Positions 1,858 to 21,239 of a DNA stretch of 26,697 bases are shown piece after piece. The notes beneath the pieces were generated by a model that made no database searches, had not been told where the DNA came from, and worked only from the letters and a program-made list of their open reading frames with translations. The DNA lies in the NCBI GenBank assembly GCA_002269645.1, contig NIVC01003263.1, positions 1 to 26,697 of the forward strand. The letters are read 5' to 3'. Every line of letters begins with the position of its first letter. Positions within the stretch are counted from its first letter, which is position 1. This stretch comes from Macrostomum lignano. Lineage: Eukaryota. A program made the position numbers and the translations under genes.

Positions 1858-1898
1858 TCAGTCACCGTTAACAGCGGGACTGTCGGCCTCTCCAAAGT
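1858..1898 (-). CDS. PTP gene coding exon 4 (last): (D)FGEADSPAVNGD*
   Basis: Acceptor tttcAG at 1900-1899; phase 1 matches exon 3; TGA at 1860-1858. Confidence 0.8.
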
Positions 1899-2243: not shown

Positions 2244-2376
2244 CCTCTGCCTCGTTGACATCAAGCTGGAGTGAGCCGGCAGATTTCTGGCCATTCCTAT
2301 CACCGGCAGTCCCGGAAATCAGGTTCTCCTTCACCAGGTTGTGCAGCAGGCATTTGTACACGAAGGCGAGCTGGCT
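2244..2376 (-). CDS. PTP gene coding exon 3: SQLAFVYKCLLHNLVKENLISGTAGDRNGQKSAGSLQLDVNEAE; completes the Q-loop/C-terminal helix
   Basis: Acceptor gcgcAG at 2378-2377, donor GTGAGT at 2243; the join gives MVHSR|SQLAFVY, aligning with the classical PTP motif MVQTxxQYxFxY. Confidence 0.92.
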
Positions 2377-3082: not shown

Positions 3083-3595
3083 CTATGGCCAAGGCCAGTC
3101 GTCTATGACCAAGGCTAGTTGTCTTTGACCAAGGCCAGTTGTCTATGGCCAAGGCTAGCTGTCTATGGCCAAGGCCAGTTGTCTATGGCCAAAGCCAGCT
3201 GTCTATGGCCAAGGCCAGCTGTCTATGGCCAAGGCCAGCTGACTATGGCCAAGGCCAGCTGTCTATGGCCAAGGCTAGCTGTCTATGGCCAAGGCCAGTT
3301 GTCTATGGCCAAGGCCAGTTGTCTATGGCCAAGGCCAGTTGTCTATGGCCAAGGCTAGCTGTCTATGGCCAAGGCCAGCTATCTATGGCCCAGGCTAGCT
3401 GTCTATGGCCAAGGCCAGCTATCTATGGCCCAGGCTAGCTGTCTATGGCCAAGGCCAGCTATCTATGGCCCAGGCTAGCTGTCTATGGCCAAGGCCAGCT
3501 GTCTATGGCCAAGGCCAGCTATCTATGGCCAAGGCCAGTTGTCTATGGCCAAGGCCAGTTGTCTATGGCCAAGGCTAGCTGTCTATGGCCCAGGC
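3083..3595. repeat. 20-bp minisatellite GTCTATGGCCAAGGCCAGCT in PTP intron 2
   Basis: About 25 tandem copies; explains ORFs 3119..3358, 3139..3438 and the repeat part of 3445..3987. Confidence 0.97.
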
Positions 3596-3602
3596 TACGT
3601 AC

Positions 3603-4542
3603 CCTGCTGTGCACCATGCCCGGCCGGCTCAGCCTCAGCCCGACAACGGCGGCCGGCACGTCCACTTGCTGGCTGGCGCGCACTCCGTCAATGCTGAAGG
3701 ACAGCAGGCAGAGCAGGACGCCGGTCCGGCCGACGCCGCTGTCGCAGTGGACGACGGTCGGCCAGTCCGGCCTGGCGGTGGCGCCCACCTCAGCGGCAAA
3801 GCGGCAGAAGCCGGCAGGGTCTAGGCCGGACCAGTCCGCCGACAGCGGCAGGCCCAAATACTGCAGGTGGCGAAGCCGGCGGGTCTCGCTGGAGTCGCCG
3901 GTCACGGACACTGTCAGCTCACGGCGGATCAGGTTTCCGTCGTCTAGCGTCTCCTCAGTTTCCATAGCAACTGTGTACTGGCCGTAGCAGACGCTGGTCC
4001 CAGTCTCGTCCGGCCAGTATTTGGCGCAGGCGCTCCGGCCTTGTTCAACACAGTCCGTTACCATGGCAACTAGGCGAACCCCGGACTCCCAGATCATCTG
4101 CCAATGCTGGCCGAGCGTCTCCTGCAGAGGTCCTTGGCAGGCGATGTACCGGCGATTGGACACTCGAAGAGGGCTAGCGTTGACGTAGTCGGACGGGGCC
4201 CTGGTCAGCCGCAGCAGCGGGTCCTCGCAGCCGCCGCCTTCGTCGGAGTCCGCCTCATCGAGATTTTCCTCAGAATCCTCGTCGAAATCTGGCATGTCGG
4301 CCGAGGGTTTCGGCAGCGACAGTTTGACCCGGTTCGAGTCGTAGGGCAGCACGTTGGTGTAGCGGTTCTTCAGGGTGTTGCGCAGGCTCTGGCCGCATTC
4401 TACACTGAAGATGAGGCGCTCGCAGTTCGAGCCGATGAGGTTCAGCCGCTCCAGCTGCTTTTCCAGCTCCTCCTCTCCCTCCTTCGTCTGCAGCAGCCGT
4501 CTGGCGTGGTCAGCGAATCCGCTGAGCTGGATGGAGGTGCGG
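3603..4542 (-). CDS. PTP gene coding exon 2: classical tyrosine phosphatase domain (closest in my recollection to PTPN13/14/21-type non-receptor PTPs)
   Basis: Motifs KNRYTNVLPYDSNRVKL, DYVNAS, YIACQGPL, WQMIWE, CAKYWP, VHCDSGVGRTG, RLSRPGMVHS; acceptor ccgccAG at 4544-4543, donor GTACGT at 3602. Confidence 0.95.
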
Positions 4543-4604
4543 CTGGCGGAGGCGCGACGGGTGGGGAGTTATAGAGGGGTTTCAAGAGAGTTCGGGATCT
4601 AATG

Positions 4605-5245
4605 GAGAGTTGAAAGGGAGATCTGGTGGGGATCTGAGAGGGGGATCTAGTTTGATCTGAGATGGGGATCTAGTGGGATCTGAGAGGGAGATCTAGTGGG
4701 ATCTGAGAGGGGGATCTAGTGGGATCTGAGAGGGAGATCTAGTGGGATCTAAGAGGGAGATCTAGTGGGATCTGAGAGGGAGATCTAGTGGGATCTGAGA
4801 GGGGGATCTAGTGGGATCTGAGAGGGAGATCTAGTGGGATCTGAGAGGGGGATCTAGTGGGATCTGAGAGGGAGGTCTAGTGGGATCTGAGAGGGAGATC
4901 TAGTGGGATCTGAAAGGGAGATCTAGTGGGATCTGAGAGGGAGATCCAGTGGGATCTAAGAGGGAGGTCTAGTAAGATCTGAGAGGGAGATCTAGTGGGA
5001 TCTGAGAGGGGGATCTAGTGGGATCTGAGAGGGAGATATAGTGGGATCTGAGAGGGAGATATAGTGGGGATCTGAGAGGGGGATCTAGTGGGATCTGAGA
5101 GGGGGATCTGGTGTGCTCTGAGAGGGGGATCTAGAGGGATCTGAGATGGAGGTCTAGTGGGATCTGAGAGGGAGATCTAGTGGGATCTGAGAGGGAGATC
5201 TAGTGGGATCCGAAAGGGAGGTCTAGTGGGGATGAGCAAGATCTA
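4605..5245. repeat. 23-bp minisatellite GATCTAGTGGGATCTGAGAGGGA in PTP intron 1
   Basis: Tandem copies visible, two GATC per unit. Confidence 0.97.
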
Positions 5246-5563
5246 GCAAAGTTAAGAGGATTTCCACCCCCATGCGTCCCCCTTCTCCCGCAGCTTGCAG
5301 CCTATACATGTACGCGAGAGCAAGTTTAAACCCCAGATATTTTTATTCGCCAAAAAATTTCTTCCTTATCGCAGCTAATTTCCTTCCTGAAGCAGAAATT
5401 TAATTGTGTTCTCAATTTAATTGCCAGAAGCAGCTTCCCCGGTGCTTAGCGGTAGACGAACAAGTCATTCCTTTTTTCTTTCTCCAAGCATCAGAGAGGC
5501 TCGCATTTAATTGCATCCCTATTCCTTCTGGCGAGCGCAAGCAGGTCTTGAGATTTCTGCTTC

Positions 5564-5600
5564 TTAGGGTTAGGGTTAAGGGCTATGGCTAAGGGTTAGG
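5564..5600 (+). repeat. Short interstitial telomere-like tract (TTAGGG)2 plus degenerate copies
   Basis: ttagggttagggttaagggctatggctaagggttagg. Confidence 0.55.
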
Positions 5601-5714
5601 AGTTGTACGAGCATGTTTGAGCCATTACGAATTTGATCTGGAGTGACTGGAAGACTGTCTGATTATTTTTGCTCATTTTTATTACTCATGGACGTCACTT
5701 CCTCCTTACTGCTT

Positions 5715-6195
5715 AATCCAGCCTCCAACCCACTGCTTCCATCCTTTATCCTACTGCTTCCATCCTTTATCCTACTGCTTCCATCCTTTATCCTACTGCT
5801 TCCATCCTTTATCCTACTGCTTCCATCCTTTATCCTACTGCTTCCATCCTTTATCCTACTGCTTCCATCCTTTATCCTACTGCTTCCATCCTTTATCCTA
5901 CTGCTTCCATCCTTTATCCTACTGCTTCCATCCTTTATCCTACTGCTTCCATCCTTTATCCTACTGCTTCCATCCTTTATCCTACTGCTTCCATCCTTTA
6001 TCCTACTGCTTCCATCCTTTATCCTACTGCTTCCATCCTTTATCTCATTGCTTCCATCCTTTATCCTACTGCTTCCATCCTTTATCCTATTGCTTCCACC
6101 CTCCAATCCACTGCTTCCACCCTCCAACCCACTGCTTCCACCCTTTATCCCATTGCTTGCATCCTTTATCCCATTGCTTCCATCCTCCAACCCAC
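5715..6195. repeat. 21-bp minisatellite CCTTTATCCTACTGCTTCCAT in PTP intron 1
   Basis: Near-perfect central copies; explains ORFs 5643..6512 and 5663..6241. Confidence 0.97.
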
Positions 6196-6241
6196 AGCTG
6201 CAGGCGCCCACAATCCTGGCTACTCCCGAGCCCGCGCTCAC

Positions 6242-6345
6242 CTTTTCCGCTTGCCCCTCTTGCCGCCGGGTGTCAGCAGCTTCTTCACCCTCAGCTCCAC
6301 AGAATCCTCAATATCCTCGGCAGAGGCCGACGCGCAGTTCCCCAT
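6242..6345 (-). CDS. PTP gene coding exon 1: MGNCASASAEDIEDSVELRVKKLLTPGGKRGKRK(S)
   Basis: ATG at 6345, donor AG|GTGAGC at 6241; phase 2 matches the exon 2 acceptor; the four exons sum to 1218 nt = 405 aa plus stop. Confidence 0.85.
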
Positions 6346-6449
6346 GCCGCCTTCGTCTGGCCCGCTCGGTCGGGTGCTTTTGTCTCCGCTTCGGAGCACA
6401 GAAGGCCGCGTACTCTGCGCTCGCGTCTATCAAGCTGCTAGCAGGATTT

Positions 6450-6476
6450 CTTGCGGAGAGAGAGAGAGAGAGAGAA
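6450..6476 (-). promoter_or_regulatory. (CT)n polypyrimidine tract and AG acceptor upstream of the PTP 5' UTR (cis-intron or trans-splice acceptor)
   Basis: Minus strand reads ctctctctctctctctctccgcaAG|aaatcc; a candidate donor TGG|GTGAGG lies at 6842. Confidence 0.55.
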
Positions 6477-7194
6477 GCAGAGGAACAGGCGGGTCAGGTA
6501 CGCGGCGGTTAATTGAGCCGCAGATAGGTCAATCAGAGTCGGCCGCGGCCTAGACAGCGAATTAAGACTTTGTACTGGCAGATAAGGACTCGAATTTGGC
6601 TGTCTTAATGGCTCTGTATGCCTGGCAGGGGGGGGGAGGGAGGCACTGAGCTGATAAACTGAGCACGTCTGCACGGGACACCCTCACGAGGGACCCCACC
6701 GGATTGGCCCCCGCAGCCCCACAGCCGATTTTGCCGCTTTTACCCTCGAGAAGCAGAACGAGCCAGAACGAGGCTCTCACTGCGAACTCTGACGGAAACA
6801 CAGAATTTGTTTCAAACCACCACATTTTCCCCAGCACCTCACCCAATTCCCATGCATGGGAGCGGCAGCTAGGGATGCGGAAAACACCCGAGGAACCGGG
6901 CCCACTAACGCTTTCAGTTCGTTTCGAACGCTTTGCTTTCGACTAAAAATGATAGCAATACGTATTTTTAAACTCGATTCGAATATCCCATCCGACAAAC
7001 ACTTGTTTACATTTTTTTCGCTCGCTTATTAATTTGAGCCATGCTGCAGCTGCGGGAGCTTAAAGAGGCCACTTGGACCGAGCAGTCTGGGGGACCCGCA
7101 TCTGCAACCATTCAAGCAATTAGTTAATCAGCAGCGCTAGCACCCGCGCCTCGGGTGCAGAGCCTGCCTGCATCTGCCTACGCATCCTTCAACC

Positions 7195-8720
7195 TGCCCC
7201 CCGGTCCTTCACTGGTCACCCCCACTACCCCCTACCCCCGGTCCTTCACTGGTCACTCCCACTACCCCCTACCCCGGTCCTTCACTGGTCACCCCCACTA
7301 CCCCCTACCCGGTCCTTCACTGGTCACCCCCACCACCCCCTACCCCCGGTCCTTCACTGGTCACTCCCACTACCCCCTACCCCCGGTCCTTCACTGGTCA
7401 CCCCCACCACCCCCTACCCCCGGTCCTTCACTGGTCACTCCCACTACCACCCTACCCCCGGTCCTTCACTGGTCACCCCACCACCCCCTACCCCCGGTCC
7501 TTCACTGGTCACCCCCACTACCCCCCTACCCGGTCCTTCACTGGTCACCCCACTACCCCCTACCCCCGGTCCTTCACTGGTCACCCCCACTACCCCCCTA
7601 CCCCCGGTCCTTCACTGGTCACCCCACTACCCCCTACCCCCGGTCCTTCACTGGTCACCCCACCACCCCCTACCCCCGGTCCTTCACTGGTCACTCCCAC
7701 CACCCCCTACCCCCGGTCCTTCACTGGTCACTCCCACTACCCCCCTACCCCCGTTCCTTCACTGGTCACCCCCACTACCCCCTACCCCCGGTGATTCACT
7801 GGTCACCCCCACTATCCCCCTACCCGGTCCTTCACTGGTCACCCCCACTAACCCCCTACCCGGTCCTTCACTGGTCACCCCCACTAACCCCCCTACCCCC
7901 AGTCCTTCACTGGTCACCCCCACTATCCCCCTACCCGGTCCTTCACTGGTCACCCCCACTAACCCCCCTACCCCCAGTCCTTCACTGGTCACCCCCACTA
8001 TCCCCCTACCCGGTCCTTTACTGGTCACCCCCACTAACCCCCTACCCCCGGTCCTTCACTGGTCACCCCCACCACCCCCTACCCCGGTCCTTCACTGGTC
8101 ACTCCCACTACCACCCTACCCCGGTCCTTCACTGGTCACCCCCACCACCCCCTACCCCGGTCCTTCACTGGTCACCCCCACTACCCCCCTACCCGGTCCT
8201 TCACTGGTCACCCCCACTACCCCCTACCCGGTCCTTCACTGGTCACCCCCACTACCCCCTACCCGGTCCTTCACTGGTCACCCCCACTACCCCCTACCCC
8301 CGGTGATTCACTGGTCACCCCCACTACCCCCCTACCCCGGTGATTCACTGGTCACCCCACTACCCCCCTACCCCCGGTGATTCACTGGTCACCCCACTAC
8401 CCCCTACCCCGGTGATTCACTGGTCACCCCACTATCCCCCTACCCGGTCCTTCACTGGTCACCCCCACTAACCCCCCTACCCGGTCCTTCACTGGTCACC
8501 CCCACTAACCCCCCTACCCCGGTCCTTCACTGGTCACCCCCACTAACCCCCCTACCCCCAGTCCTTCACTGGTCACCCCCACCGCTCTCCCTCACCCCGG
8601 TGATTCACTGGTCACCCCCACCGCTCTCCCCCAATGCCCCCGGTGATTCACTGGTCACCCCCACCGCTCTCCCCCTGTCCCTGGTGATTCACTGGTCACA
8701 TGTCACCCCCACCGCTCCCC
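7195..8720. repeat. ~36-40 bp C-rich minisatellite CCCCGGTCCTTCACTGGTCACCCCCACTACCCCCTAC (G-tract rich on -)
   Basis: Tandem copies visible; explains Pro-rich ORF 7155..8306 and ORF 7759..8034. Confidence 0.97.
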
Positions 8721-9249: not shown

Positions 9250-10168
9250 AGCAACTGAAATCAGAAACCAGTTGGGGATCTCACAGCAACTGAAATCCCA
9301 TGGCAGTTGGGGATCTCACAGCAAATGAAATCCCATCTCAGTTGGGGATCTCAAGGCAACTGAAACCCCCCATCTCGATTGGGGATCTCACAGCAACTGA
9401 AATCCCATGGCAGTTGGGGATCTCACAGCAACTGAAATCCCATGGCAGTTGGGGATCTCACAGCAACTGAAATCCCATGGCAGTTGGGGATCTCAAGGCA
9501 ACTGAAATCCCCCATCTCGATTGGGGATCCCACAGAAACTGAAATCCCATGGCAGTTGGGGATCTCAAGGCAACTGAAACCCCCCATCTCGATTGGGGAT
9601 CTCACAGCAACTGAAATCCCATGGCAGTTGGGGATCTCACAGCAACTGAAATCCCATGGCAGTTGGGGATCTCACAGCAACTGAAATCCCATGGCAGTTG
9701 GGGATCTCAAGGCAACTGAAATCCCCCATCTCGATTGGGGATCCCACAGAAACTGAAATCCCATGGCAGTTGGGGATCTCAAGGCAACTGAAATCCCCCA
9801 TCTCGATTGGGGATCTCACAGCAACTGAAATCCCCCATCTCAATTGGGGATCTCACAGCAACTGAAATCCCCCATCTCAATTGGGGATCTTACAGCAACT
9901 GAAATCCCCCATCTCAATTGGGGATCTCACAGCAACTGAAATCCCCCATCTCAATTGGGGATCTCACAGCAACTGAAATCCCCCATCTCAATTGGGGATC
10001 TCACAGCAACTGAAATCCCCCATCTCAGTTGGGGATCTCACAGCAACTGAAATCCCCCATCTCAGTAGGGGATCCCACAGCAACTGAAATCCCCCATCTC
10101 AGTTGCGGATCTCACAGCAACTGAAATCCCCCATCTCAGTTGCGGATCTCACAGCAACTGAAATCCCA
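9250..10168. repeat. 35/37-bp minisatellite GATCTCACAGCAACTGAAATCCCATGGCAGTTGGG with alternating variants (72-bp higher-order unit)
   Basis: Tandem copies visible; the 24-aa periodicity of ORFs 9442..9684 and 9656..9865 reflects the 35+37 bp dimer. Confidence 0.96.
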
Positions 10169-10216: not shown

Positions 10217-10602
10217 CTACAATGGCGGGGGCTTGGCAGAGTACAGGTAGACCTGGCCAAAGATGGCCAGATCGATGCCAACCTGCAGCAGGCCGCACAG
10301 CCAGAACTGCACAGGTGCTGAGCGCACTATGAAATAAGAAGTTTTGAATATATCGCCAGAAGTCCACATGGCCACCATGGCGATGCTCATGCCGTCTGTC
10401 GATCGGTTCTTTAAATTCCTGTAGAACTGCGGCGCGCCCAGCAGGGCTTCGAAAAATACGGCCAGAAATCCCAGCAGTTCGACAAAAACGGGCTGGTCGG
10501 ACAGGGGGTAGGTGATGCAGGATGCTGCGACTGTGAATAGCAGCAGGAATTGCAGGTAGCTGAGGAAATCCGTCCACTTCCAGAAGTGGGCGCTCTCCAG
10601 GT
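10217..10602 (-). CDS. SLC66A2: PQ-loop transporter exon 3 (second PQ loop): DLESAHFWKWTDF...EALLGAPQFYRN...STDGMSIAMVAMWTSGDIFKTSYF
   Basis: Recognisable similarity to the PQLC1/SLC66A2 C-terminal half (HFWxW, LGxPQ, STxGMS, WTSGDxFKT); acceptor ccttccgcAG at 10604-10603; TAG at 10219-10217. Confidence 0.92.
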
Positions 10603-10674
10603 CTGCGGAAGGTTGCCAGAGTTGTGCATGGAATTTCAGGAAATGGATCGCCACTACAGGCTTTCTATCGTCAG

Positions 10675-11200
10675 GTGGGCTGCCACCCCACCCCATTCTT
10701 CAGTGGTCTGCCACCCCACCCCATTCTTCAGTGGTCTGCCACCCCACCCCATTCTTCAGTGGTCTGCCACCCCACCCCATTCTTCAGTGGTCTGCCACCC
10801 CACCCCATTCTTCAGTGGTCTGCCACACCCCATTCTTCAGTGGTCTGCCAACCCACCCCATTCTTCAGTGGTCTGCCACCACCCCATTCTTCAGTGGTCT
10901 GCCACCACCCCATTCTTCAGTGGTCTGCCACCACCCCATTCTTCAGTGGTCTGCCAACACACCCCATTCTTCAGTGGTCTGCCACCCACCCCATTCTTCA
11001 GTGGTCTGCCACCCCCCATTCTTCAGTGGTCTGCCACCACCCCATTCTTCAGTGGTCTGCCACCACCCCATTCTTCAGTGGTCTGCCACACCCCCATTCT
11101 TCAGTGGTCTGCCACCCCACCCATTCTTCAGTGGTCTGCCAATCCACCCCATCTTCAGTGGTCTGCCACCCATTCTTCAGTGGTCTGCCACCCCACATTC
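10675..11200. repeat. ~25-28 bp minisatellite CCCCATTCTTCAGTGGTCTGCCAC in PQ-loop gene intron 2
   Basis: Tandem copies; explains ORFs 10550..11263, 10624..11313 and 10731..11210. Confidence 0.97.
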
Positions 11201-11204
11201 AGTG

Positions 11205-11341
11205 CTCTGAAACGCCGAATCTTATCAGTAGGCAGAATAGTCTTCTGTCGGGTTCGCACATAGATATGAACCATGCACAGCATAGTGAAGATCATGACAA
11301 AGCTTTGCGCTAACAATGGCAATTCAAAGTGCTTGCAGAAC
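11205..11341 (-). CDS. SLC66A2: PQ-loop transporter exon 2: FCKHFELPLLAQSFVMIFTMLCMVHIYVRTRQKTILPTDKIRRFR (3' boundary uncertain)
   Basis: Acceptor ttgccAG at 11343-11342 completes the split Trp codon; resembles PQLC1 [21 protein letters not shown]; no canonical donor at the homology-predicted end. Confidence 0.8.
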
Positions 11342-11431
11342 CTGGCAAGATATTTGATAGGAAAGTGGGGCATACATAGAGAGGTTTGACAGCTGGTTCA
11401 CACTTAAATAGGCTTGAACAGCAAGGGCTTA

Positions 11432-11644
<213 letters not shown>

Positions 11645-19368: not shown

Positions 19369-19648
19369 TTAGGTAAGAAAGGCCGGGAGAAAGGCCAGCA
19401 CACTTGCTCCGCACCTCGGGCATTGACTCCGACTCGTACTGCATCGCGAGCAAATCACCAGGTGTCTGCAAGGCAGGCAGACTCTGTTCACCTGGTTGGA
19501 CTGACACGCCCTGCATGCGCTTGAGTCTGGCTTGTCGGTGTCCTGCTCAGAGCGTTGCTCTGGTGAGCATTCTGCTTCTGCCGCTGCTGCCGCTGCTGCC
19601 GGTGCAGCGGCTTCGGGTGTCCGCTGTAGGCTATAGAGACCCAACGAT
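19369..19648 (-). CDS. IAP-like protein exon 4: Ala-rich linker plus C-terminal C3HC4 RING (CRACQSNQVNRVCLPCRHLVICSRCSTSRSQCPRC...AFLT*)
   Basis: C-x2-C-x11-C-x-H-x3-C-x2-C-x6-C-x2-C spacing and F-L-T terminus typical of IAP RINGs; acceptor ttctcccAG at 19650-19649; AATAAA on - at 19207-19212. Confidence 0.93.
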
Positions 19649-19809
19649 CTGGGAGAAACAGACATTGGTGGTGGAATCGCATCGTTGGTAATGGAATCGC
19701 ATCGTTTCATTCGTGGGATGGCGAGTTTGCGCACAAGTGCAATACGTATTTGACAGATTTTGACGGATTCATATTGGACTTCATATCACATTTAGATCGG
19801 AGAACATTG

Positions 19810-20120: not shown

Positions 20121-20208
20121 AGCGAGCATGCAAATACTTCACTAAAAAGGTGACAGTGGACGTGATAGTGATTTCGAAGATCAATTTATCGAATCTTGCC
20201 AGACTTAC

Positions 20209-20569
20209 CTGTCAGCTTTTCCCATGCCGAGCAGGGCGTCAACAGCGTCAGGCAGGAGCTTCCAACGGAGTGTCGCCCAGACCTCACCGCAGTACCCGCC
20301 GTCTGTCAAATACTGATGGACGCTGCTGATCAGGTCCCCGGCCTGGAGCTGGTCAACCAGCGGACCGATCTGACCAGCTTGCACTGATCCCTCTTTGCCT
20401 GGCTTGCTGCAGCACCGAGCCAGAACCGCAAGCAGGAGGTCAGGCATCTCGAACCCAAAGGTGACAGCTATCCGCGCCGCTATGGAGTCCTGCAGCCGGT
20501 GCCAGATGGAAGCCAGCAGCTGGCAGAACTGATCCACAGCTGCTGCTGTTGTAGCTTCTGGTGATTTTC
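20209..20569 (-). CDS. IAP-like protein exon 3, UBA-like region (SIAARIAVTFGFEMPDLLLAV...LVDQL)
   Basis: Acceptor tttgcAG at 20571-20570, donor AG|GTAAGT at 20208; phases 1 and 2 match the neighbouring exons; resembles the IAP UBA segment (A-x-x-x-GF). Confidence 0.85.
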
Positions 20570-21239
20570 CTGCAAAGTGTTTGAATTTCATAGTGCAGTG
20601 AGCTGTCCTCATCAAAATCGAGGAAATCTTACTACGAGCGCGTAGTATCGGAGGCATAGCTTATTAGTAGAAGTCTGGATTTCTTAAGCACAACTAATAC
20701 GAGTACAATTAAGGGCTGATAGTTGAGATACTTGATATACGAGTGGTTTAGGCCCACTACTGGCTACTGCTGCAAAAATGAGCCAAGTAGTCAGTATCAC
20801 CCAACTAGCAACTCTGGTAAACGCACCTTATTTTTTATGGTTGCACTTAAGCGAACCTTTCTACATTTCCATCGCATTCTGTGGTTTGTAAACTGCAACT
20901 GCTTGCACAATTTTCGCGTCTCTAGGAACATACGAAAACCTCTAATATTTTATTGTTTCATCCTTAGTTTAAATCAACGTAACGGAACGTTGCAACACAA
21001 GCTCCAGTGGACAAAGCATTAGATTGGGAGCTTCAAATCCTGCAGTTTAAGGAATCAATGCTTATTCTAGGCGCCGCCGTGCCCTTGTACGCCGTGTGTT
21101 CCGCCTCAAGCCTTGCAGTGCTGTATGTTATCTAAACTTTTTTTTAGGACACTTTAGACAGCGTAGACCTCAGCCCCCAGCAAACCTTGATTCTATGGGA
21201 TCTCCACAAAATTTACAGAAACATAGTAAAACAATTTAC

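Follow-up and report, generated by a model that had tools for sequence, protein, structure and literature searches.

A lineage-restricted classical-fold PTP of Macrostomum lignano with a predicted SH4-like acyl anchor and an incomplete catalytic site

The location of a PTP largely decides its substrates, and classical PTPs are placed by transmembrane helices, by ER tails, or by protein- and lipid-binding modules. The locus described here raises the question of whether a PTP domain might be held at the membrane by acyl groups on its own N-terminus and, if so, whether the tethered domain would act as an ordinary phosphatase. The DNA analyzed (the window) is the entire 26,697-base contig NIVC01003263.1 of the assembly Mlig_3_7 (GCA_002269645.1) of Macrostomum lignano, a free-living flatworm, and an original prediction had taken the gene product to be a lipid-anchored minimal PTP. 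The gene is real, selectively maintained, and specific to the Macrostomum lineage; for its product, the explanation favored here, to which about an even chance of being correct is given, is a lipid-tethered, catalytically impaired classical-fold PTP that would trap or protect phosphotyrosine proteins at the membrane, or dephosphorylate them very slowly.

The PTP gene lies on the minus strand and comprises four exons, with a coding sequence (CDS) of 1,218 nt for a protein of 405 residues (Table 1). Its splice sites, checked on the window sequence, are canonical, the exon 1 donor agrees with the M. lignano donor consensus GT[G/A]AG (PMC8629364), and the joining of exon 1 to the acceptor ...CCGCCAG/CC at 4542 preserves the reading frame. 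The spliced product is 100% identical to the GenBank entries PAA52317.1/PAA86471.1 ('hypothetical protein BOX15_Mlig033588g2/g3'), so that a public gene model already contains both the start codon and the 6242/4542 junction, and the UniRef entry A0A1I8HN93 (hereafter P0013), which comes from a separate assembly and annotation, agrees with the window model in both start and junction. The identity to GenBank and the annotation of P0013 bear out the proposal that the protein opens with MGNCAS by way of this splice. An RNA-derived contig encoding the 405-residue protein was looked for, and none was found.

Table 1. Coordinates of the PTP gene, its sequence motifs, and other features of the window (a slash within a sequence marks the splice junction).
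Feature	Position	Strand	Remarks
CDS exon 1	6242-6345	-	104 nt; ATG at 6345; donor AAG/GTGAGC; encodes MGNCASASAEDIEDSVELRVKKLLTPGGKRGKRK plus 2 nt of codon 35; Gly2/Ser6 predicted N-myristoylation site, Cys4 candidate S-acylation site, acidic residues 10-18, basic residues 19-36
Intron 1	4543-6241	-	1,699 nt; mostly two tandem arrays, 5732-6186 (21-bp unit) and 4596-5230 (23-bp unit)
CDS exon 2	3603-4542	-	Residues 35-348; N-terminal helices and most of the PTP domain
CDS exon 3	2244-2376	-	Residues 349-392; remainder of the Q-loop helix, beginning of the C-terminal tail
CDS exon 4	1858-1898	-	Residues 393-405 and stop codon
Tandem stops TGA TAG	6427-6432	-	In frame with the ATG at 6345; unchanged in both other genomic copies
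(CT)n pyrimidine tract and AAG/A acceptor	6449-6475	-	Exon would begin at 6449
Basic motif KRKSRTS	6244-6253 and 4533-4542	-	Residues 32-38
KNRY phosphotyrosine-recognition motif	4359-4370	-	K93-N-R-Y96, then ..PYD; conserved
Acidic insertion KPSADMPDFDEDSEENLDEADSDEGGGCEDPLLRLTRA	4197-4310	-	About 38 residues (113-150), between the NRV and DYVNAS motifs
WPD-loop equivalent LPL	3843-3851	-	Residues 266-268; general-acid Asp and hinge Trp missing
P-loop HCDSGVGRT	3723-3749	-	Residues 300-308; nucleophile Cys301 and Arg307 kept
His346 at the PTP1B Gln262 position, Q-loop	3609-3611	-	Second Gln (Q350, the Q266 equivalent) kept
PQ-loop repeat gene (PF04193)	10217-11644	-	About 3.8 kb upstream of the PTP gene; stop at 10219-10217
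ORF with C-terminal C3HC4 RING finger	19369-19734	-	PF13920, E = 8e-10
150-aa ORF next to the RING ORF	20205-20657	-	No Pfam match
Tandem arrays (4 to 37 bp units)	99-1319, 1983-2243, 3083-3595, 4596-5230, 5732-6186, 7198-8664, 9269-10167, 10675-11200		In introns and intergenic DNA

Three near-identical copies of the gene are annotated in M. lignano (Mlig033588.g1-g3); the copies are more than 98% identical, and every one of them begins with MGNCAS. Nine of the ten CDS substitutions that separate the window copy from g1 (locus L003) are synonymous and the only non-synonymous one, G404D, falls in the tail (pN/pS 0.036; binomial P = 2.6e-5), a distribution that shows, at the level of substitution counts, purifying selection on the PTP gene; the further substitutions of P0013 are located in the acidic insertion and in the tail. 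Exon 1 and about 355 nt upstream of it are 100% identical in all three genomic copies (over 501 nt in L001, window 6200-6700 against 9646-10146, and over 465 nt in L003, window 6236-6700 against 5646-6110), with a CDS difference of 0.8% between the window and L003. Conservation of promoter and leader, gene conversion, or plain low divergence could each account for this identity; use of the genomic copies as independent evidence was rejected, since fully identical 5' regions are uninformative on the constraint acting on exon 1. The differences between the window and L003 lie nearly all within tandem arrays, the unique sequence being about 99% identical. The same PQ-loop and PTP genes are also found at the end of a 722-kb scaffold (L001; NIVC01000280.1, 698178-722667), where neither the PTP protein nor the 501 nt of DNA compared differs from the window, and the window contig is probably an assembly redundancy or a haplotig of the hidden-polyploid genome. 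Outside M. lignano, neither a word-indexed search of 5.8 billion proteins nor a full HMMER scan of 1.84 billion representatives returned an orthologue, or anything else, above about 39-40% identity, and a short MG...C...S architecture comparable to that of the flatworm PTP is absent from the 150 best relatives.

The assignment of the N-terminus depends on the true position of the start codon. Between 6449 and 6345, no ATG is found in the window sequence, and the reading frame of the 5' leader is closed, because the TGA TAG pair at 6432-6427 stands in frame with the ATG at 6345; the next Met after Met1 is M118, inside the PTP domain, which leaves no sensible start further downstream. In M. lignano, about 30% of the genes are trans-spliced, the spliced leader (SL) terminates in ATG, and the trans-splice acceptor motif is [T/C]TNCAG (PMC8629364). 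Position 6449, the acceptor used by the older gene model P0012, is a candidate cis- or SL trans-splice acceptor for the 5' UTR; it has no match to the [T/C]TNCAG motif, and an SL ATG spliced there would open only the short reading frame MKSC followed by a stop. When the upstream AG sites were tested one by one, only 6426 and 6414 placed the SL ATG in the frame of the CDS, and neither has a pyrimidine tract or the trans-splice motif. An upstream coding exon spliced at 6449, named in the original prediction as an observation that would count against it, was checked for, and the claim stood, the frame being closed by the tandem stops. Taken together, a true Met-Gly start is well supported by the genome sequence, if not proven.

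The fusion represented by P0012, in which the last codon of the upstream PQ-loop gene is joined at 6449 and read through to MGNCAS, was considered as an alternative gene model and judged an artefact: it was ruled out because it calls for a shift of frame found in none of the three Mlig_3_7 copies, and it is doubted further in view of P0002, from the same older assembly, which carries several frameshifts. The junction as such suggests either read-through or operon-like transcription from the PQ-loop gene, which lies on the same strand, or else a prediction artefact. Elsewhere in the window, large tandem arrays occupy introns and intergenic DNA, and the RING-finger ORF and its 150-aa neighbor, which has no Pfam match, are together probably part of another gene.

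The spliced translation starts MGNCASASAEDIEDSVELRVKKLLTPGGKRGKRKSRTS, and the segment GNCASA of its MGNCASA opening fits the PROSITE pattern PS00008, G-{EDRKHPFYW}-x(2)-[STAGCN]-{P}, with the favored Ser at position 6 and, within a few residues of Gly2, a Cys at position 4, which is at motif level the arrangement of SH4-type dual acylation. Judged by composition, about 1.2% of Met-initiated proteins are expected to match PS00008 by chance, about 0.5% when S/T at position 6 is also demanded, and about 0.035% when a Cys at positions 3-5 is added; the MGNCAS combination is therefore uncommon by composition, but a functionless occurrence somewhere in a large proteome is still conceivable. The acyl site is separated from the K/R cluster (residues 19-36, with 9 K/R) by the segment 10-18 (EDIEDSVEL), which contains five acidic residues, and the net charge over residues 1-36 is +4. 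The original prediction had MGNCAS followed by a basic patch; both elements are present, but they are not adjacent, residues 7-20 having been omitted from the earlier transcription, and the polybasic component of the proposed anchor is weakened because five D/E lie between the acyl site and the basic cluster. In the AlphaFold model, residues 1-34 are disordered (pLDDT ~28) and confident helices begin at residue 36, which fits, as far as the model goes, a flexible tether. The motif KRKSRTS, which closes the basic cluster, resembles a basophilic-kinase site, and it is pure speculation that its phosphorylation could be an electrostatic switch for membrane release; KRGKRK, within the same N-terminal region, could equally serve as a nuclear localisation signal. 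Anchors composed of a myristoyl-Gly and a palmitoyl-Cys are documented elsewhere, for example in PfAK2 (PMC7884776), and a lipid anchor is a reasonable prediction at motif level for the flatworm protein. Within the reading of a lipid-anchored minimal PTP, then, the gene model, the start, and the architecture of an SH4-like N-terminus followed by one PTP domain hold, and lipidation has the standing of a motif-level prediction.

As to the remainder of the protein, Pfam identifies PF00102 as the sole domain (residues 90-359, profile positions 1-233/234, 186.4 bits against a cutoff of 20.9). Neither a signal peptide, a transmembrane segment, nor a C-terminal hydrophobic tail was found in the 405 residues; the highest Kyte-Doolittle mean over 19 residues, located in the P-loop helix, is 1.35, so that the protein has no transmembrane segment. 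Accessory targeting domains (FERM, PDZ, SH2, Sec14, BRO1, PEST, KIM, or an ER tail) are likewise absent from the Pfam result, and the flatworm protein fits none of the non-receptor PTP subfamilies defined by accessory domains, in agreement with the original description of a PTP domain standing alone, without accessory domain or transmembrane segment, outside the standard subfamilies. The nearest relatives are receptor-type PTP domains (PTPRS, PTPRA, PTPRE, PTPRB, PTPRJ), at 39% identity or less, and Foldseek gives E = 5e-17 to PTPRB and target-length-normalised TM scores of 0.76-0.79 against the catalytic domains of PTPRB, PTPRG, and IA-2. The AlphaFold (AF2) model behind the structural comparison was built on a shallow alignment (9 sequences); its mean pLDDT is 61.6, with core values mostly of 65-90 and dips at residues 198-206 and 301-310. 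Assignment to a subfamily was attempted by PDB sequence search, Foldseek, and the names of the top representatives, which point loosely to receptor-type domains (R2A, R3, R4) and to SHP2, none of them clearly closest. Identity as a receptor-type PTP was also considered and rejected, given the lack of a signal peptide and of a transmembrane helix and the closed upstream frame, even with the best similarity still being to receptor-type catalytic domains. The acidic insertion of about 38 residues, a predicted disordered segment, is missing from every PTP domain compared; of the four substitutions of P0013, three fall in it, which suggests, from this variant, that the insertion is weakly constrained.

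The catalytic motifs were compared with about 300 aligned PTP domains of the best relatives and with a separate set of eight individual homologues. KNRY, DYxNA, QGP, E201, KxxYWP, His300, Cys301, Gly304/306, Arg307, and Q350 are retained, and the P-loop, H300-C301-D-S-G-V-G-R307-T, conforms to HCX5R; the two residues after Cys301 are atypical, D against S in 221 of 305 domains and S against A in 175 of 307. The tripeptide LPL aligns to WPD in both the HMMER and the MAFFT alignments, in a loop two residues longer, at positions occupied by W in 257 of 294 domains and by D in 135 of 274 (E in 35). At the Q262 position, Q is present in 215 of the 300 aligned domains and H, the residue of the flatworm domain, is outside the six commonest; in addition, Leu substitutes for the Tyr of QY. 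The term 'classical PTP' used in the original prediction is correct for the fold and the family (PF00102), but other residues stand in for the WPD Trp/Asp and for the Q262 equivalent, the P-loop has HCDSG, and on the basis of these motifs the protein should better be described as a classical-fold PTP with an incomplete catalytic site. In PTP1B, D181A cuts kcat about 10^5-fold, mutation of Gln262 lowers it about 100-fold, and D181A/Q262A is a substrate/product trap (PMC10267100), and in PTPRK the change of Asp to Glu alone costs about 115-fold (PMC7320164). Normal catalytic activity of the flatworm domain is, from its motifs, doubtful, and by analogy the domain looks like a natural counterpart of the trapping mutant. 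One of two aspartates of the lengthened loop, D271 or D276, might supply the general acid and leave some residual activity.

Parts of this combination are found in several known systems. The SH4-type anchors of Src-family kinases, G-alpha i/o, and PfAK2 have Met-Gly-x-x-x-Ser/Thr, a nearby Cys, and downstream basic residues in common with the flatworm protein, and the pairing of myristoyl-Gly with palmitoyl-Cys gives stable membrane binding; in the flatworm protein, in contrast, Cys occupies position 4, an acidic stretch precedes the basic cluster, which begins at residue 19, and the cargo is a PTP domain, not a kinase or GTPase. DUSP22 (JSP-1) and DUSP15 (VHY) resemble it in the union of a single CX5R catalytic domain with an N-terminal myristoylation site; they are catalytically competent and are not known to have a nearby palmitoylatable Cys or a basic cluster. 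Both are N-myristoylated Cys-based phosphatases (PMC7589817 and its references), but of the small atypical dual-specificity type and not PF00102 classical PTPs.

The closest functional analogue found, judged by features, is the pair EAK-6 and SDF-9 of Caenorhabditis elegans, two small PTP homologues with a single domain that are located at the plasma membrane (PMC1487177). Both share with the flatworm protein the single PTP domain with no accessory domain or transmembrane segment, and in EAK-6 the Cys is kept, the D181 and Q262 positions are replaced (D181E, Q262L), no activity on pNPP was detected, and phosphotyrosine binding was proposed by the authors (PMC1487177). They differ in having no myristoylation motif of their own, the motif residing on EAK-4, a separate N-myristoylated partner whose G2A mutant leaves the membrane (PMC1487177), and EAK-6 has lost R45, H214, and G220 in addition, all of them retained in the flatworm protein. 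The pseudophosphatase domains of receptor PTPs (D2 domains and PTPRU D1), proposed as substrate binders or as protectors against dephosphorylation (PMC7320164), likewise have the classical PTP fold with the Cys kept and the WPD Asp substituted; they are, however, tethered by a transmembrane segment and usually in tandem with an active D1, whereas the flatworm protein has a single domain and no transmembrane segment. In the PTP1B D181A/Q262A construct, the same two catalytic positions are removed with Cys and Arg kept, kcat falls about 10^5-fold, and phosphotyrosine binding is retained or improved (PMC10267100); this is a laboratory protein in which both positions are Ala and the WPD Trp remains, whereas the flatworm protein has Leu and His at the two positions and a longer, remodelled loop. 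In the literature searched, which covers part of the journals, no classical-fold PTP with a Src/SH4-type acyl anchor of its own was found, the gene ID gave no match, and the main text of a paper on the human myristoylome does not mention phosphatases. Chimeras of the src myristoylation signal with CD45 have reportedly been made.

In the mechanism proposed, the initiator Met would be removed and Gly2 N-myristoylated co-translationally, with (acyl-)GNCASASAEDIEDSVELR as the predicted N-terminal peptide; Cys4 would be S-acylated after the protein reaches the membrane, and the K/R cluster at 19-36 would add electrostatic affinity for acidic lipids. Acyl groups and cluster together would keep the domain at the cytosolic face of the membrane, tethered by some 35 disordered residues. 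The retention of the phosphotyrosine pocket (KNRY, Cys301, Arg307, His300, Q350) and the loss of the WPD Trp/Asp and of the Gln262 equivalent point to binding with little turnover, and the domain would bind phosphotyrosine proteins and release them dephosphorylated very slowly or not at all. With two key catalytic residues missing, a membrane-tethered phosphotyrosine binder or a very slow enzyme is more likely than an ordinary phosphatase, and the role may be that of a trap or protector, or of a very slow phosphatase, rather than that of a normal PTP.

Other explanations bear on either end of this proposal. As regards the N-terminus, the annotated start might be wrong and the AUG supplied by the SL or by an upstream exon, in which case Gly2 would be internal and myristoylation impossible. 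The ATG-ending SL and the share of trans-spliced genes in M. lignano (PMC8629364), the P0012 connection to the PQ-loop gene through acceptor 6449, and the in-frame AG sites at 6426 and 6414 can be invoked for such a start, but the frame change of P0012 is missing in all three Mlig_3_7 copies, an SL ATG at 6449 yields only the MKSC peptide with the CDS frame shut by TGA TAG, the two AG sites have neither the pyrimidine tract nor [T/C]TNCAG, and two independent annotations begin at 6345, which together make an upstream start very improbable. It is less far-fetched, yet still unlikely, that MGNCAS is fortuitous or weakly used by NMT, that the protein is soluble, and that KRGKRK is a nuclear localisation or protein-binding signal: around 1% of Met-initiated sequences fit PS00008 by chance, the acidic segment 10-18 stands between the acyl site and the basic cluster, and the searches gave no orthologue outside the M. 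lignano copies in which the motif would be conserved, but chance alone would give Gly2 with an allowed residue 3, Ser6, and Cys4 in only about 0.035% of sequences, and the predicted disorder of residues 1-34 would leave the N-terminus accessible.

As regards the domain, the original prediction implied a fully active classical PTP with a myristoyl/palmitoyl/basic anchor that dephosphorylates membrane-proximal substrates, equivalent to the D1 of a receptor PTP without its transmembrane segment. The conservation of Cys301, Arg307, His300, KNRY, Q350, and E201, the strong purifying selection on the protein, and the availability of D271 and D276 as general acid in the remodelled loop speak for activity; this reading is nevertheless rather doubtful in view of the loss of both the WPD Trp and Asp, the His at the Q262 position, the 10^2- to 10^5-fold drop in kcat that equivalent mutations cause in PTP1B and PTPRK, and the absence of pNPP activity in EAK-6, whose substitutions are milder (PMC1487177). 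A more specific form of the trapping idea, only tentatively entertained, makes the protein a lipid-anchored substrate trap that arose in nature from a receptor PTP; it would have lost the ectodomain, the transmembrane helix, the general acid, and Gln262, would have gained an SH4-like anchor, and would sequester or protect phosphotyrosine proteins, with targets at the inner leaflet such as Src-family kinases or receptor tails. At the other extreme, the degenerate catalytic motifs, the unique acidic insertion, and the failure to find orthologues might be taken as signs of lost function in a receptor PTP domain duplicate that is decaying or has become a pseudogene; the ORF is, however, intact over four exons in three copies, the substitutions stand at 9 synonymous to 1 non-synonymous (pN/pS 0.036, P = 2.6e-5), and the structural-core motifs are all retained, which leaves decay with hardly any probability.

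What is new in the favored explanation, that of a lipid-tethered and catalytically impaired classical-fold PTP, is that the PTP domain, by its LPL, HCDSG, and His346 signatures, is catalytically non-canonical. The gene is confined to its lineage, its product already has a public entry as a hypothetical protein, and lipidation and activity are predictions; since M. lignano is tractable by transgenesis, both localisation and function are directly testable. If the anchor is real, the protein would represent a further evolutionary route to membrane-proximal phosphotyrosine control, one that mirrors two kinds of engineered protein, the membrane-targeted PTP constructs and the D181A/Q262A traps, and, if the trapping reading is true, it would be a counterpart, in one polypeptide, of the EAK-4/EAK-6/SDF-9 module of C. 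elegans.
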